From: Auanema rhodensis
Lineage: Eukaryota > Animalia > Nematoda
Direction: 5' to 3'
DNA: 64,000 nucleotides
Assembly: GCA_964057225.1 (NCBI GenBank)
Contig: OZ059895.1
Coordinates: 7,626,001-7,690,000, forward strand
Of this stretch, positions 6,411-29,000 are shown in pieces. A model generated the notes under the pieces. It saw only the letters and a program-made list of their open reading frames with translations, did not search any database and was not told the DNA's origin. A program made the translations under genes and the position numbers. Within the stretch, counting starts at the first letter, position 1. Each line of letters starts with the position of its first letter.

Positions 6411-7694
<1,284 letters not shown>

Positions 7695-16700: not shown

Positions 16701-17260
16701 ACTTTCAATGAAAGTGATCGTACAGAAACACTGCTATCCTTCAATATTTCTATTTAACTTATATAAAATGTCATAGTACTCACTAATGAAAGTTTATCGA
16801 ATATTGTACAATAATAGTCATAAGCAGCTTTACTATCTTTAGGGTCTTTCGAAAAACTGACAGAACAAATTTCTCTTAAAGCCTGAACTGATTCACAATT
16901 TTTGAACATTTGACAGACAGACAAACCTTTTCGCGAGTTTGTGGGTCTTTTTTAGCCAATTTTTTGAAAATTTGAATTAATTCAGGTTCAATTTCATTGC
17001 CTGGTTCAAAATCATTTGAATCATTTGTGGCAGCCAAAGCTTAAAAATATATATGAACTTTTATGAACAAATTCAGAAATAGTACATCCATCTATTCCTA
17101 AAAACGACAGGGTATGTCCTGATGAAGAAAGTAACTCTGCTGCACGAGCACTACTAGCTGACTGCAAATAAATATATATATATATATATATATTAATAAA
17201 AAACTAGAAAGTATAGTTTAAACTTACTGAAACATTTTTTTTTCTACGATTTCCGCTCAT
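10761..17260 (-). CDS. LTN1: E3 ubiquitin ligase listerin (RNF160/Ltn1), many exons
   Basis: N-terminus MSGNRRKKNVS|SASSARAAELL..FKKLAKKDPQTREK. C-terminal RWD region (KTIPVARQVVAEYIVDETTMRLILTLPLNYPL), ILIWRNNVDKDVEGTEACSICL, RING ending TWFQSSGKETCPLCRNHFLGSR*. Confidence 0.95.
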
Positions 17261-17565
17261 TACACAATGTTGTGCAATATTTAAATTAATAAAAATCGAA
17301 AAGAGGACCCCTACTAATTATTTTTGATGGGCTCAACTTGTGAAAACCTTAAGAATAATAGTAAATAACAGCAATAATTTACAAAAGTAATGCTCGAAGA
17401 AGGTTAATTAAGTTGTTACTGAAACATAACGAGAAAAGTTTACCCAGCATTTAAAAAGGGGCGTGGCGTACGTAACGATATGACCGCGGGAGTGTGATAT
17501 TTTTTTGCAATTTCAAAAACTGTATTGCAAGCTGGAAGTCTAATCAGTATTTGAGGCTTCGCGAG
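17261..17565. promoter_or_regulatory. Short bidirectional promoter between LTN1 and the FLASH-like gene
   Basis: Head-to-head ATGs about 305 bp apart, with a single GC/CpG patch at 17458-17491 in AT-rich DNA. Confidence 0.55.
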
Positions 17566-20500
17566 ATGGTAAGTGGGACAGTTTCAGAAAATCAAGAATC
17601 TAGGACCTATAATGAATGGAGCTGGCTTGAAGGTATAAATATTTTTTTGAATATGTTAATGAAACTTGATTTGTTAGATTCTCCAAATGAGAACAACGTA
17701 CCTTTGAAAAATGTGAATAATCCTGTTAAAGTGAATGCTACACCTGAAAAACCTAAAAACAAAGTTGTTGCAACAAATGTGGGTGCTTTTGTTATCTTAT
17801 TTTATTTTTGTTCTACATATTTTAGCAAAGAAAGCAAGCAGAAGAAGTTTTAGCAAACTATGCTAATAATATGCGGAAGCTTATTATTACAGCTAGACAA
17901 CAAATAAATAGTTTAAATTCTGAAGTAATTGAGTTGAATCAGAAGTAGGAATCTTTATTAAAATAATTAACATATGTTGAATACAGGTTAGAATCAAGTG
18001 GGATAATTCAGTGCCCAGCATGTTGCTTTAGATTTAAAGAAAGAAATCATCGACAAGTTCCAAAATATATTAAGGTGTTGCATTAATCATACTTTAAACT
18101 GAATACAACAATTTTGGGTTTTTCGAGGAAAACTGTCTATTGAAATGGAGTTTGGCTCCCTTGATCTTTTATCCGAATATCTTACACTGAATGGATTGGA
18201 TAAAATGGCTGATGGTTTACCAACATTGATGGCACCTGAAGTAGCTGAAGAACCATCATTAGCAAATACAGGAAGCATTCTGCCAACCCTGGAAACTGAA
18301 GTTAGTATTTTGAATTATGTACGAGTTTATTTATTACTTCATAGAAATCAAAAAATAATACCGGTAAATTCCAAAAGAATGTAACTTCAAATTCCCAAGT
18401 TGAAAAAAATTCTTCAGCCAAACCTAAATGCAATCCCAAAATTCGAAAAGAACCTGTGCCCTCTGCGAGCAACAGGTATCACTTTTCTTTTATATAACCT
18501 TAATTGTATGCATTTTTAAGATGTGAAAACAAAGCTGTTTCAAAATCTCTAAGCGTAGGCCAAAAACGAAAAGCTTCTCCAATAAAACATCCTCAATCTC
18601 GAAGACGATCGCCTGAAAATGTTTGAAAATATTCAAATAAATAAAGTTTTTTCTGTACTTTCAGAAGAAAACCAGAGTTGAGGAATGCTCAAGTAGTAAA
18701 ATGAGAAATGTAATATTCACATATTCTGGTGTTTTATCCGAATCAGTTTTTTTCTTAGGGTGCTTGTGATGTCCGTTTGAATTCTAGTTCATGTCGTCGA
18801 ACTCGGGATGAAGATAGAAAAGAAATGGTTTCATTCAATGTTTTAATATGATTTAGGTTATTGTTGTTCAGGACATCGTGCCACGTTCTCGAAAATGTTC
18901 TCGGGACAATGATAAATCTGTTCAAAAAAGTTCACGAAACGATGAATCTTATAAGGAAAAGGACAAGAATAACAGAAAACAGGAAGAAAAAAATTCCACA
19001 AAGTTGACACGAAAGAGCGCTCGACATTGTTTGAATAATTCGAATGAAACGACCGTAAGCAATTTCACCCGAATAGTTTTCGTTTATACCGTTTTTAATT
19101 ATCAGACGCACATTTCTAGTAAAGGATCGCGTTCTGAGAAAATAGAAATAGTTAAGGTTTGTCGCTTAAGTGCTTCTGATCTAAAATATTTTTTCGGAAT
19201 TTTTCAGAAAGATCGAACTCAAAAGCGCAGTTTTCCCTCTCCCGAGAAATCTACCAATGTTGAGGTTTAACTATTTGAACTATATATTTTTAATTCTTCA
19301 TTTAAGAATAAAAAGATCGACGATAAGTCATACGGATCCGGAAACTCTTCCAAGCTTGAAAATAATTCTATAGCCTTAGAAGATGGTGAAATCGACGATA
19401 ACTTTGTTATGAAGAGTGATCAATCTAAAGATCAACTTCTAATAAATTCAGGTGATTATCAACAGTCAAAAAATACAATTGCTAGTAAAATAAATTCTGC
19501 ATTAGAGGTGAGCTTCTATAATAAAAATCTTAGTATATCTTTATATTGAAGAATTTATCCGATCCGTGTACTTCTCATAATAGATTATGTTGGATAGATC
19601 CTAATGAACTTTCTTTCTGTGAATTGAACGAAAATCAACCTATGTATTTCCGTCATGTGAACATTGGTGCTATTAGTGATAATCAATTTTTAAATTCTTG
19701 TGATACTCTTGTACCCTGTGATAATAGAACAGGCAATGTTCTTCTCCCTAATGAGAGCCCGTTAGTTATTTCTTAAATTTGCTCACTTTATTTCGAAATA
19801 TTTTTAGCATTGCCTTGTTAAATTGTGTTAATAACTCGAAACAAAACGCGCAGTTCGATCGATTTAATGAAGAAGATCCTATTCCACAGCAAACACATCC
19901 AGAAGCTCGAATTAGTTTTGCGAGGTTTTTTTATTTTTAATTCCATATAAACTATTCATTTATTTAATTTCTAGTGATGAACCATCTAGTTGTGGGAGAA
20001 ATCTCATTCAAACTTTTCCTAAAAAGAAAGAAAAAGAAGTTGCTGACCGAATCGCCGTTATTTCAGAAAATTCTAAAAAAGTAAAATTAGTTGAAGATGA
20101 TCAAAACATATTTGTTGAAAATCTCCAGCCATCATGTATCATCGAGGCTCCCAGTACAATAGAAGCTCCCAGTACGATAGAAACTCACAGTACTATCAAT
20201 TCTCCCAATGTTGTCAAGGCTAGCAATATTGTCGAGGCTACTAATGCTGTTGAGTCTATCAGTACTGTTAAGTCTACCAGTAGTATCAAGGTTCCCAGAT
20301 TTATCCAAGCTCCCAGTACTGTTGAATCTACCAGTACTGCCGAGTCTACTAGTAGAATTCCTCAGAATCATAAGACTATGGAGAATCCCAAGATTATGGA
20401 GAATTCCAAGACTATGGAGAATCCCAAGACTATGGAGAATCCCAAGACTATGGAAGATCCAAAAACTATGGAGAATCCCAAGACTATGGAAGATCCCAAG

Positions 20501-21131
20501 ACTATGGAAGATCCAAAAACTATGGAAGATCCTAAAACTATGGAAGATCCTAAAACTATGGAAGATCCTAAAACTATGGAAGATCCTAAAACTATGGAAG
20601 ATCCTAAAACTATGGAAGATCCTAAAACTATGGAAGATCCTAAAACTATGGAAGATCCCAAAACTATGGAAGATCCCAAAACTATGGAAGATCCCAAAAC
20701 TATCAAGACTCCCAGTAGTATCAAGGTTCCCAGAACTATAAAGGCTCCCAGCACCTTCGAAACTCATAATACTGCCGTTAGTTCTATAGAAGCTTCTAGC
20801 GTTGTCGAGGTAGCTAGGTCAATAAAGCCTAGTGCTGTGGATGTTCCTAGGTCTATAGATGCACCCAATAGTGCGGACGTTCCAGAAAACAACAAAAAAT
20901 TGGAAACTACTGCGATTTCTGATGATGAAATGGAATTTGGTGTTGTTGTTTCATGTGAAGAGGACATTCTAAGTGATAATTTTGAAAGTGATAATGAAAG
21001 CTGTAATAGTATGATTTCGAATATGCGATTAGACCTTATGTCCTATTTTAGATTTTGAAGTTGTTGATTCAGAGAATGATATACTCGACGAACAATATTC
21101 AGACCAAGAAGAGGAATTTGAATCATCCTGA
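17566..21131 (+). CDS. Uncharacterised protein with FLASH/CASP8AP2-like N-terminal coiled coil, CxxC motif, basic low-complexity middle, (EDPKTM)n repeat and acidic tail; multi-exon
   Basis: Exon 17826-17944 reads QRKQAEEVLANYANNMRKLIITARQQINSLNSEVIELNQK, followed by LESSGIIQCPACCFRF. Later exons are in the ORF track (18145.., 18878.., 19546.., 20378..). Ends EEEFESS* at 21131. The start codon is uncertain. Confidence 0.7.
20372..20701 (+). repeat. Coding 18-bp minisatellite (GAAGATCCTAAAACTATG, about 18 copies; EDPKTM)
   Basis: Directly visible tandem units. Degenerate 6-aa units flank it on both sides (about 20141-20880). Confidence 0.97.
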
Positions 21132-26063: not shown

Positions 26064-29000
26064 TCATGCAACAACTGCCATCGACCCATTATCAGATCTG
26101 GTGTCCTTGATTTGAAGTGGACTCTTTTCGATTATGCCATTCTTTTTATCACCGAAGCCATTTTCAAGACAGGTCCTCTTTGATGGAGGGCTCTAAAAAT
26201 ATTACTACGTAAACAGCTAGTTGATAAATAGTTACGTCGTCTCGGCTTGTTCCTCTTTTTCCTCCTTTACCTACTTGAGCTACAGGAACAACATGTGTAT
26301 CTCCATTTATGTTAGCTTTATCGCTTCCGGTATCTACGTTATCAGCAGAAACATCGCTGGATTCCTCTTCGAGCTCAGATTTTACCGATGACTTTTTACC
26401 TAAAGTAATTAATAAAACTTTTTCCAATCAAAAATTTTACTTACAGTTTTTATTCTCAGTGTTGGAAGAATTTCCAGATGCCGCAGATACTTCTAATTTA
26501 CTAAGAGCTCCTTGAATTTCATAGAGAATATCAGCGAACATTCCTGCTACACGAGAATCCATCTAGGAAAAAAAGTAAAAAAATTAATGTTTTGAAAATA
26601 ACTTACCAATTGACTCATTGTAAATTGTAGTAGTCGTTGTTGATGCTTTAAGTAATACTTATACGCTTCAGGCACCTTGATCAAATTCCGAAGAATGGTA
26701 GCTGCCCTTCTTAGCATTCCTACAGATGTACCCATCATTTCTGGATTCTCTCTAAGAGCAGCGATTCCATGACTTTGCATAACTTGATGCATTGTTTGAT
26801 CGGCATGCTCGATGAAGGCAATTAAATGTGGAATGACAGTTGTATCATGAGCAGTGACAAAGCAAACTGCTTCAGATGCATTACATAGTGCGTTGAGAAT
26901 AACTATGGCGAATTCTCTGAAAACTTATCATATACACAAATATATCTTACTCTTTTACCTGTTATGAGAATCTTCTGACAAGTTCACCAACTTCGTCAGG
27001 ACATGGGCAAACTTTTCTAACCTGGGCCATGATCCCGTGGATATTAACATGTCTACATTTCTTTCCAAAACAGACATTTTACAAAGAATTTCCAAACAGT
27101 AGTTTCTTCAAAAAAAAGTTATAAGTAACGGGTATTCACAACAATACTTACCTCACAGAAGTTGCTGCAGGTGGAATAGGGTCAATAGCTTCGGGAACAC
27201 TAGATACACTCCACCTCAACAATCCATCGTAAATTGGATAAGACAGGGTATCGTCGACATCAAAAAGATCAAGCTGGAAGTACAATATTTATCGACATAA
27301 TCAATGAAAATACTTACCGAAGCACTCATATGGCACAACATAACAAAAGCATCATCTCTAAGTTGTTGAGCAGTTTCAACCAACAAACGCTCCCTATTGT
27401 CATCATGTTCCAAAAGAGCTACTGCTTTAGCACGAGAAACCTCATAGGATTCGCGTTCAGGAAGAGATCCATCCTAAGAAATAAAATTTCATGTAAAGAC
27501 ATATCATCTTTGAACGTACCGGTTCAACTTTAGTAGGCTTAATTCTAGTTACACGAACTTCCTGTGCCATCAAAGACAAAAACCTGCCAATCATAAAGAG
27601 TACACCATTATGTCTACAGAGAAGTTGTTCATTTCCAGGTAAGAAAGAAAAACCCCGTAAAATGTTAGAAAGAGCTAACGCTCTCATTGCCTGAATAGAG
27701 ACAAAACATAAAATAAATACTTAGAAAATATTCTCACAAGTCTATAGAAGAATTCATCCTTCTCACTAAGAGCACTATGGCGAGGCCATCTAAGTTCATA
27801 TTCTATAGGTACATCAGATAGTTCGACTTTTTTAGACCTCCGATATAATAAAATCTCAGGAACATCCTGCAACAGAAATGATTGTTAAATAAAAGTTTTT
27901 ATAAAACTACTTCATCATCATCTGGGACTTCTTGCTTAACGTTAATATCCGTGGGGACAACTGCATCCGTACTCTCATCAGAGGGATGCAGTGAAAATCT
28001 TGGTCCTGGTTCAGCGCTTGACGCCTCCCATTCAGCCTTTAATCTTGAGGCAATTCTTTCAGCAAGGCCACCACCAAGACCTAGTTTAGATCTTTCTTCA
28101 ACATAAGATGTAGTTAAAGATTCTATAATTAAATAATTCAGTAAGAGAAAAATAATAGATTCAAACCGTCGCTTTCGACACTTGTGCTTTGTTCTAACAT
28201 TATTCGACGTTTTAGCGATTCAGGCATCTCGGCTTCTTTTACTTGAACTTTCCGCCCGTTTCGAGATTGCTAGAACCAAAATTTACAAAAATTATTCAGT
28301 GAAAATACACTTACCTTGGTATAGTTTACTTTCTTTTCAACGTTTTTTACATTAACAAGATGTTTTACTTCTTGCCGAATAGTTGAAGCCAGTATAGTCA
28401 TCATACTATCAGATAGAGTATCTTGAGCGAAAACTTGTTTACGAGTCGGTTCCGTTAGCTAAAAATTTGATTTAAAAATTATTTGACTCAATAAAAAAAA
28501 TCAAGTGGGCTTACTGGGAATGTTTCGGGATAAAGTAAAGATAATGTGGCCCAGAAGTGTTCAATAATAACGTTCAAAATTGATGGTATTTGAGCAAGCG
28601 ATGGATGAGGATTAGTATCGTCATACAATAACACGTTTAATGCATTAATAGCCCAGATTGCTTCTGTCTCAAGTCCACTTCTAAGAGCCATAACCAAGCG
28701 CCTTGGAGTAGCCTTCAAATGAAATAAAAAATTTATATTTCTAAAAACTAACTCACATTTATTAAATCCCTAGCTAATAATTTCCTTCGTCTTTTTTGGC
28801 TTATAGTAGTAGCTTCAATGCTGCCAGCAGGGAATGTGTGTAAATGTGAAAAAGATGAAGTAGTTTGTTGAACTGACATAGCCTAAATAAACGGTTCAAA
28901 AAACGAAGAAAAAAAATCTGTACAGCTGATGGATATCCTGCTGGATGAGCCTGAGGACCCGGACGATGAGGGGTGGCAGGGGAAGGTGCATGAACTACAG

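Follow-up and report, generated by a model that had tools for sequence, protein, structure and literature searches.

Introduction

The gene described here lies in a stretch of 64 kb of the genome of the nematode Auanema rhodensis (GCA_964057225.1, contig OZ059895.1, positions 7,626,001 to 7,690,000; this whole stretch will be referred to as the window), and the closest described system with which it can be compared is FLASH (CASP8AP2). Residues 55-137 of FLASH are conserved from fly to human. In the human protein the Lsm11-binding part of the coil comprises residues 100-137, in which L118 and I119 are required for Lsm11 binding, their replacement abolishing it, and Arg128-Lys129-Asp130 form an interface ion pair (PMC5636114). 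An LDLY/LDIY motif located N-terminal to the coil recruits the cleavage complex (PMC3884669, PMC5636114). The C-terminal SANT/Myb-like domain (PF21227), which is shared with GON4L/YARP, binds NPAT, and FLASH furthermore carries SUMO-interaction motifs (SIMs; PMC12305476). We consider, with a probability of about 0.5, that the 933-residue protein encoded in the window is a largely disordered nuclear adaptor built on the FLASH plan, that is, a dimeric effector of ARS2 bearing an ARS2-recruitment motif (ARM).

Through the ARM, whose consensus is (E/D)(D/E)G(E)(L/I/V), effectors attach to ARS2 at its zinc-finger leg (10.1101/2023.07.25.550453; PMC9402713 for the crystal structure), where K719, K722 and K734 of human ARS2 are the motif contacts (PMC5923425, PMC9402713). 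Human FLASH binds ARS2 via its FARB peptide, 931-DELEEGEIRSDSE-943, which contains LEEGEI (PMC5923425). A literature search yielded no report of an ARM-type ARS2 effector in nematodes.

How nematodes form stem-loop histone mRNA ends without a U7 small nuclear ribonucleoprotein (snRNP) is still unexplained, the current proposal being a route via small interfering RNA and CSR-1 (PMC4896052, PMC10846616, PMC4841609). C. elegans is said to lack FLASH, NPAT and U7 (PMC4896052, PMC10846616). A preliminary description of the locus had started from the premise that C. elegans has neither U7 nor Lsm10. The first part agrees with the literature, in which no U7 has been identified (PMC4841609, PMC6509145), whereas an LSm10 orthologue is annotated under K07A1.15 (PMC5737717), and the premise is thus not watertight.

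Results

The gene was modelled by eye and by script, and its features are compiled in Table 1. All introns are of the GT-AG type and, with the exception of intron 4, 41-51 nucleotides (nt) long. E, D, S, K and N abound in the encoded protein, which also contains numerous repeats. The peptide that had been proposed in the preliminary description exists. Positions 17826-18073 of this plus-strand gene comprise exons 3 and 4 with intron 3 between them; translation of 17826-17945 yields a 40-residue peptide ending in ...NMRKLIITARQQINSLNSEVIELNQK, and exon 4 continues with LESSGIIQCPACCFRFKERNHRQVPKYIK. Exon 3 is present in one copy in the 181-Mb genome.

Structure prediction by AlphaFold2 yielded a single uninterrupted helix for exon 3, with a predicted local distance difference test score (pLDDT) of 97.5. 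Including the start of exon 4, the N-terminal helix comprises 45 residues (57-101), and the hydrophobic 3-4 spacing is clean from I76 to L97, corresponding to about three heptads. No other stretch of the window matches the Lsm11-binding segment of FLASH as well as the exon 3 helix. Of the human 27-mer used for the comparison, which had been given in the preliminary description, 24 residues agree with PDB 6AOZ_B/6ANO_B ('CASP8-associated protein 2'), the last three lying beyond the crystallised construct. In the numbering of PMC5636114 the 24 verified residues correspond to N114-H137 and the full 27-mer to N114-L140. The gap-free alignment between this segment and the exon 3/4 helix holds as originally claimed, with 12 of 27 residues identical overall and 10 of 24 in the verified part. 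The BLOSUM62 score is 43 for the verified 24 residues and 50 for those 26 residues of the 27-mer that fall within exon 3. L118/I119 of human FLASH are aligned to the L-I of ...RKLIITAR..., this pair thus being kept. Judged by shuffled sequences, the coil similarity exceeds chance as a single pair: the alignment score was reached by 2 of 20000 plain shuffles and, when the heptad class was preserved by keeping the hydrophobic positions, by 5 of 6000.

The same protein carries an exact ARM. EDGEI is flanked by L and DD (LEDGEIDD, residues 411-418) and no other [ED][DE]GE[LIV] occurs in any of the six reading frames of the window (128,000 residues); the composition of the protein itself would lead one to expect 0.008 copies. 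The motif is located at mid-length, at residue 412 of 933, as in human FLASH, where it is found at 931 of 1982. An exon of the worm ARS2 at C7:6879760-6880014 was aligned to human ARS2 (8PMP_D) with an E value of 6e-30, and the positions corresponding to K719, K722 and K734 are lysines in all three cases. With these three lysines kept, ARM-dependent docking should work in this worm, and a docking surface that is intact implies that ARM-bearing effectors should exist in it.

A further motif adjoins the coil. The sole LD[LI][YLF] of the protein is the LDLL in SLDLLSEYL of exon 5, 27 residues after the coil, and this stretch is identical to human FLASH C54-LDLY-EEIL in five of nine positions. AlphaFold2 predicted helices at exon residues 3-13 and 16-26 (pLDDT 72-79) followed by disorder. 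The coil had been described as being followed by a CPACC motif and a small globular segment; CPACC is indeed encoded in exon 4, but the segment is modelled, with moderate confidence, as these two short helices followed by a disordered part.

The syntenic locus of Auanema sp. JU1783, which was reached via the neighbouring EGR gene, contains an orthologous gene annotated at 903 residues and arranged head-to-head with LTN1 (listerin), which is also the head-to-head neighbour of the gene in the window. The orthologue runs on past position 327,931 of contig CALQYR020007257.1. The order EGR - LTN1 - 933-residue gene is conserved between the two worms. Compared over the first 40 nt, the orthologue starts with MVNVKGGNDYDEW versus MVSGTVSENQESRTYNEW in A. 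rhodensis.

Regarding the setting in which a FLASH-like protein might act, tandem histone arrays were found at C3:5255500-5262700 and C3:18511000-18518500 in addition to clusters at C1:3376000-3385999. The array units of ~3.5-3.7 kb carry H2A, H2B, H3 and H4, a layout unlike the small, scattered clusters that have been described in C. elegans. All of the histone genes terminate with the stem-loop CCCAACGGCCCTCTTTAGGGCCACA, and in eight distinct 3' flanks, which are AT-rich, no shared purine-rich downstream element was seen. SLBP is present in this worm. The LSM model of Pfam detected 15 loci, a total that a set of 7 Sm and 8 Lsm proteins would give. A search of the genome with the Rfam U7 model gave no match, but its control was void. 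Histone processing without U7 in this worm is consistent with what was tested, though not proven. As a separate observation, an exon of the Sm/LSM fold is located at C3:5234844-5234948 on the plus strand, ~20 kb away from where the C3 histone array begins.

Table 1. Features of the 933-residue gene and its upstream region (positions within the window).
Feature	Position	Strand	Description and basis
Promoter region common to the 933-residue gene and LTN1	17250..17565	.	CGCGGGA (E2F-like); read directly
Whole gene	17566..21131	+	From start codon to end of stop codon; 17 exons, 933 codons plus stop; hand-built model, in-frame closure
Exon 3	17826..17944	+	Coiled-coil helix, residues 57-96; FLASH-like stretch from 17868; translation
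Exon 4	17987..18074	+	End of helix (K-LESSG), then CPACC and basic stretch; translation
Intron 4	18075..18150	+	76 nt, weak acceptor GAAATGGAG; splice-site table and frame analysis
Exon 5	18151..18300	+	Starts FGSLDLLSEYL; amphipathic acidic helix GSLDLLSEYL (LDLY-like), then disorder
Exons 6-12	18345..19264	+	Lys/Arg/Ser-rich linker without recognisable domain (Pfam scan of exons 6, 7 and 10); translations
EDGEI, exact ARS2-recruitment motif	19379..19393	+	Exon 13, residues 412-416, context SIALEDGEIDDNF
PKTMED/PKTMEN repeats	20378..20700	+	About 20 tandem six-residue copies within exon 16; translation of open reading frame
Acidic C-terminal tail	20910..21131	+	Two SUMO-interaction-like cores, GVVVS-CEED and FEVVD-SEND; pattern recognition only

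The DNA of the PKTMED/PKTMEN repeats consists of a near-perfect 18-nt unit in ~20 tandem copies. Since the antisense frames of the repeat are also open, spurious long open reading frames (ORFs) appear on both strands at 20378-20700. The repeats gave a match to the Pfam family LED_rpt that remained below threshold (27.9 bits compared to a cut-off of 59).

As for the surroundings of the gene, TACGTAA and CGCGGGA(A) elements were recognized by eye in the promoters of both A. rhodensis and Auanema sp. JU1783 (TACGTAA...CGCGGGAA), at the same place. With its likeness to an E2F site, the CGCGGGA(A) element would hint at regulation by the cell cycle. The EGR-type gene at 6414-7655 on the minus strand is a single ORF encoding 414 residues with three zinc fingers, and its product is 73% identical to that of Auanema sp. 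JU1783, the closest annotated relative found, 46-47% identical to those of strongylids and 37-39% to those of Caenorhabditis. Downstream of the 933-residue gene, exons of a BAF250/ARID1-type gene (...VMALRSGLETEAIWAINALNVLLYDD...) are located at 26164-29000 on the minus strand.

Discussion

Considered as an ARM-bearing ARS2 effector on the FLASH plan, the protein might act as follows. The N-terminal helix of 45 residues would pair two copies as a parallel coiled coil. The central LEDGEIDD would dock on the zinc-finger 'leg' of ARS2, the partner of the cap-binding complex (CBC), and in this way tie the putative nuclear protein to capped nascent transcripts of RNA polymerase II. The coil and the adjoining acidic helix SLDLLSEYL would then recruit an RNA-processing partner, which in the case of FLASH is Lsm11 together with the cleavage complex; here, without U7, another partner would be required, possibly the cleavage factors themselves. 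Finally, the repeats and the acidic SIM-like tail may favour concentration in a nuclear body.

Several observations weigh against this reading and are gathered in the following, together with the alternatives on which they bear. The first concerns the gene model. The connection of the coil exons to the remainder of the gene hangs on one weak acceptor, that of intron 4, which is the sole long intron of the gene and the sole one with an acceptor that is not T-rich. Two AG acceptors lie within 18075-18150. Use of the T-rich one, ending at 18127, would result in a 53-nt intron and an exon starting at 18128 that runs into a stop after 20 codons, yielding a coil-only isoform of 145 residues, and the open frame is kept only by the weak acceptor, with exon 5 starting at 18151. 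Because no other acceptor keeps the frame open, 'VFRGKLSIEME', which the preliminary description had presented as protein, is most likely part of intron 4. Exons 1-4 and 5-17 might accordingly be taken for two proteins, the 145-residue coil-only product and a second one beginning at the in-frame ATG at 18145 (MEFGSLDLL...), and the unusual length and acceptor of intron 4 as well as the typical intron length obtained with the T-rich acceptor would fit such an arrangement. Nevertheless, the long form is supported by Auanema sp. JU1783, in which the gene beginning with the homologous exon 1 has an annotated length of 903 residues; moreover, the other twelve exons close in frame, and the two parts lie too close together to accommodate a terminator and a promoter. 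Two separate proteins thus appear improbable.

The second group of observations concerns homology to FLASH. Sequence and profile searches were run exon by exon. When exon 3 was compared with PDB, which holds FLASH 51-137, by phmmer, FLASH was not returned even at E ≤ 10. In the opposite direction, the human FLASH 27-mer found nothing in this genome at E ≤ 10, exon 3 included. Against 1.84 billion protein representatives, phmmer with exon 3 returned one match only and no relative; this match, a bacterial protein of 2307 residues, is an artefact, as 11 weak repeats add up to its score. The language-model search of the ESM Atlas with exon 3 retrieved generic coiled coils only, such as TACC and HOOK. 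Exon 3 also did not match the Auanema sp. JU1783 orthologue at E ≤ 0.001, presumably contained in the library since the relative of the neighbouring EGR gene is; the helix would therefore be fast-evolving, with less than roughly 60% identity between the two worms, a figure that is deduced rather than measured. Word searches, which cover only proteins of 0.55-1.75 times the query length, were blank for the ORF of exon 5 as well as for the initial 135 residues of exon 16, and a look-up of contigs encoding the exon-16 ORF gave no record. Pfam was scanned at E ≤ 10 with 13 of the 17 exons singly (all but the four shortest, 8, 9, 11 and 12), and only the sub-threshold repeat match was obtained. For exon 3 this blank is uninformative, because no Pfam model covers FLASH's N-terminal region.

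The hallmarks of FLASH are likewise affected. R128/K129/D130 are aligned to S-L-N, so that the residues of the ion pair are lost, and the coil comprises ~45 residues compared to 67 in human FLASH (71-137). In exons 1-2, which are Pro/Asn-rich and not helical in character, no LD[LI]Y was found upstream of the coil, as had already been noticed in the preliminary description, and in the LDLY-like motif of exon 5 the essential Tyr is replaced by Leu and the motif is on the wrong side of the coil. The SANT/Myb-like domain PF21227 was not found on the 13 scanned exons; across the genome its profile gave no match either, but this search had no positive control.

A true but much-diverged FLASH/CASP8AP2 orthologue, kept after the loss of U7 and Lsm11 and deprived of the LDLY position and of the NPAT-binding SANT domain, would account for several of the features. 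Three elements are present, namely the coil with L118/I119, the LD-L-x-x-E-x-L pattern and LE[ED]GEI (PMC5636114, PMC5923425), an N-terminal coil and a mid-length ARM occur in each of the two proteins, and SIM-like motifs are found at the C-terminus, FLASH having SIMs as well (PMC12305476). Orthology has, however, no statistical support from profile or reciprocal searches: the profile link to CASP8AP2, whose absence had been named beforehand as grounds for refuting the idea, failed to appear. In addition, the order of the motifs is not collinear, the Tyr is replaced and no SANT-like domain was found. Experts deny the existence of FLASH, NPAT and U7 in C. elegans (PMC4896052, PMC10846616). Furthermore, Drosophila FLASH does not bind Ars2 (PMC3884669), and the ARM is therefore not a family-wide feature of FLASH. 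We consequently regard orthology as rather unlikely. The earlier proposal of a retained or repurposed FLASH homologue finds itself in a divided position: the ARM, the ARS2 surface, L118/I119 and the LDLY-like helix all point in its direction, but the profile searches give no link to FLASH, and the upstream LDLY and the SANT domain are missing.

The third alternative is coincidence. The protein could be disordered, fast-evolving and confined to its lineage, with a short coil of the ordinary kind and no relation to ARS2 or histone mRNA, the likeness to FLASH and EDGEI both having arisen by chance. Among composition-matched 24-mers, 1.4% reached the same score at some place in the six frames of the 64-kb window; scaled from this figure to 181 Mb, ~40 six-frame matches are expected, ~1-2 of them in real proteins, and the coil similarity alone is therefore within chance at the genome level. 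According to our reading of the alignment, eight of the positions that match or are similar belong to the heptad core. Absent hallmarks of FLASH, a composition dominated by E, D, S, K and N with numerous repeats, and the fact that no homologue was detectable in any search are all in line with coincidence. The ARM is a motif of only five residues that is present in many human proteins, and both the ARM and the LDLL motif were sought after the fact. On the other hand, the window's sole ARM is located in the very protein that has the coil match. Multiplying the ~1-2 coil matches per proteome by the 0.008 expected for the ARM yields, as a rough estimate of our own, a joint expectation of ~0.01-0.02 per proteome, which argues against pure coincidence, as do the position of the LDLY-like helix next to the coil and the intact docking surface of ARS2. 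Coincidence is in our view a real possibility, though not the expected outcome; if both similarities were due to chance, the gene would represent one more fast-evolving disordered protein.

Several candidates were rejected in the course of the analysis. A metagenome scan with exon 5 pointed to contigs Ga0247610_10005773 and Ga0247611_10011543, where a microbial IMPDH-like gene had been matched by chance on its antisense strand; the matches came via the word EYLTLNGL, and their E value looked good only relative to the candidate set. A zinc hook of the Rad50 type (CPxC) was dropped as there is neither a second coil nor an ATPase, and the N-terminal coil of Shugoshin was dropped in view of the missing Pfam match and the wrong length and architecture.

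Returning to the ARM-bearing ARS2 effector on the FLASH plan, the combination of a helix resembling the Lsm11 site of FLASH, an LDLY-like helix and a canonical ARM provides a concrete and testable candidate for the missing adaptor of nematode histone mRNA 3'-end formation. The likeness to FLASH may be due to descent or to convergence. Going further, rhabditids, which are described in the field as devoid of FLASH, NPAT, U7 and histone locus bodies, might have kept a stripped-down descendant of FLASH, consisting of the coil, an LDLY-derived helix and the ARM, that couples CBC-ARS2 on nascent histone transcripts to cleavage without a U7 snRNP. We think this unlikely; if true, the descendant would supply the protein link still lacking for the formation of histone mRNA 3' ends independently of U7.

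Comparison with Known Systems

With FLASH (CASP8AP2 in human, CG4616 in Drosophila) the worm protein has in common an N-terminal helix of the parallel-coil type with N-x-x-x-L-I-x-T-A-R-x-x-I-N, an acidic LD-L-x-x-E-x-L helix near the coil and a long disordered body rich in K, R and S. Human FLASH in particular also has the central LE[ED]GEI motif for ARS2 binding, and the acidic motifs near the C-terminus of the worm protein are SIM-like by pattern only. Differences to FLASH are the shorter coil of ~45 instead of 67 residues, in which R128-K129-D130 are not kept, and the LDLL located after the coil. No SANT/Myb-like NPAT-binding domain is found on the scanned exons and no search link is significant. 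Moreover, no Lsm11/U7 partner was found here (the control of the U7 search being void and the LSM loci unclassified), and the histone genes are without a downstream element.

Generic coiled-coil adaptors such as TACC, HOOK and Rab5-binding proteins, which the ESM Atlas returned for exon 3, resemble the worm protein in the regular heptads from I76 to L97. Unlike the worm protein, none of them shares the identities with FLASH outside the heptad core (N, T, R, N, E and Q) or the context of an ARM.

The described ARM effectors, ZFC3H1/Red1, ZC3H18, ZC3H4, NCBP3 and PHAX, are comparable to the worm protein in having an exact [ED][DE]GE[LIV] in an acidic disordered context. Red1 and ZFC3H1 in addition combine the ARM with a dimerising coiled coil (PMC9402713), a dimer that is only proposed here, and as this design is not peculiar to FLASH, it has to be added to the points weighing against the FLASH plan. 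The protein might hence be the counterpart of ZFC3H1/Red1, ZC3H18, ZC3H4 or NCBP3, for which the Cys-rich CPACC...H stretch in exon 4 could also be taken. Yet no zf-C3H1, CCCH, HAT/TPR or NCBP3 domain was detected on the exons scanned with Pfam at E ≤ 10, the worm protein thus differing from these effectors in their zinc fingers, HAT repeats and RNA-binding domains, and the ARM is single and central in the worm protein whereas theirs is N-terminal and often in tandem. Such a counterpart is very improbable. If the worm protein is not derived from FLASH, it would represent a case in which the design of a 'coiled-coil dimer plus EDGEI' has arisen again.

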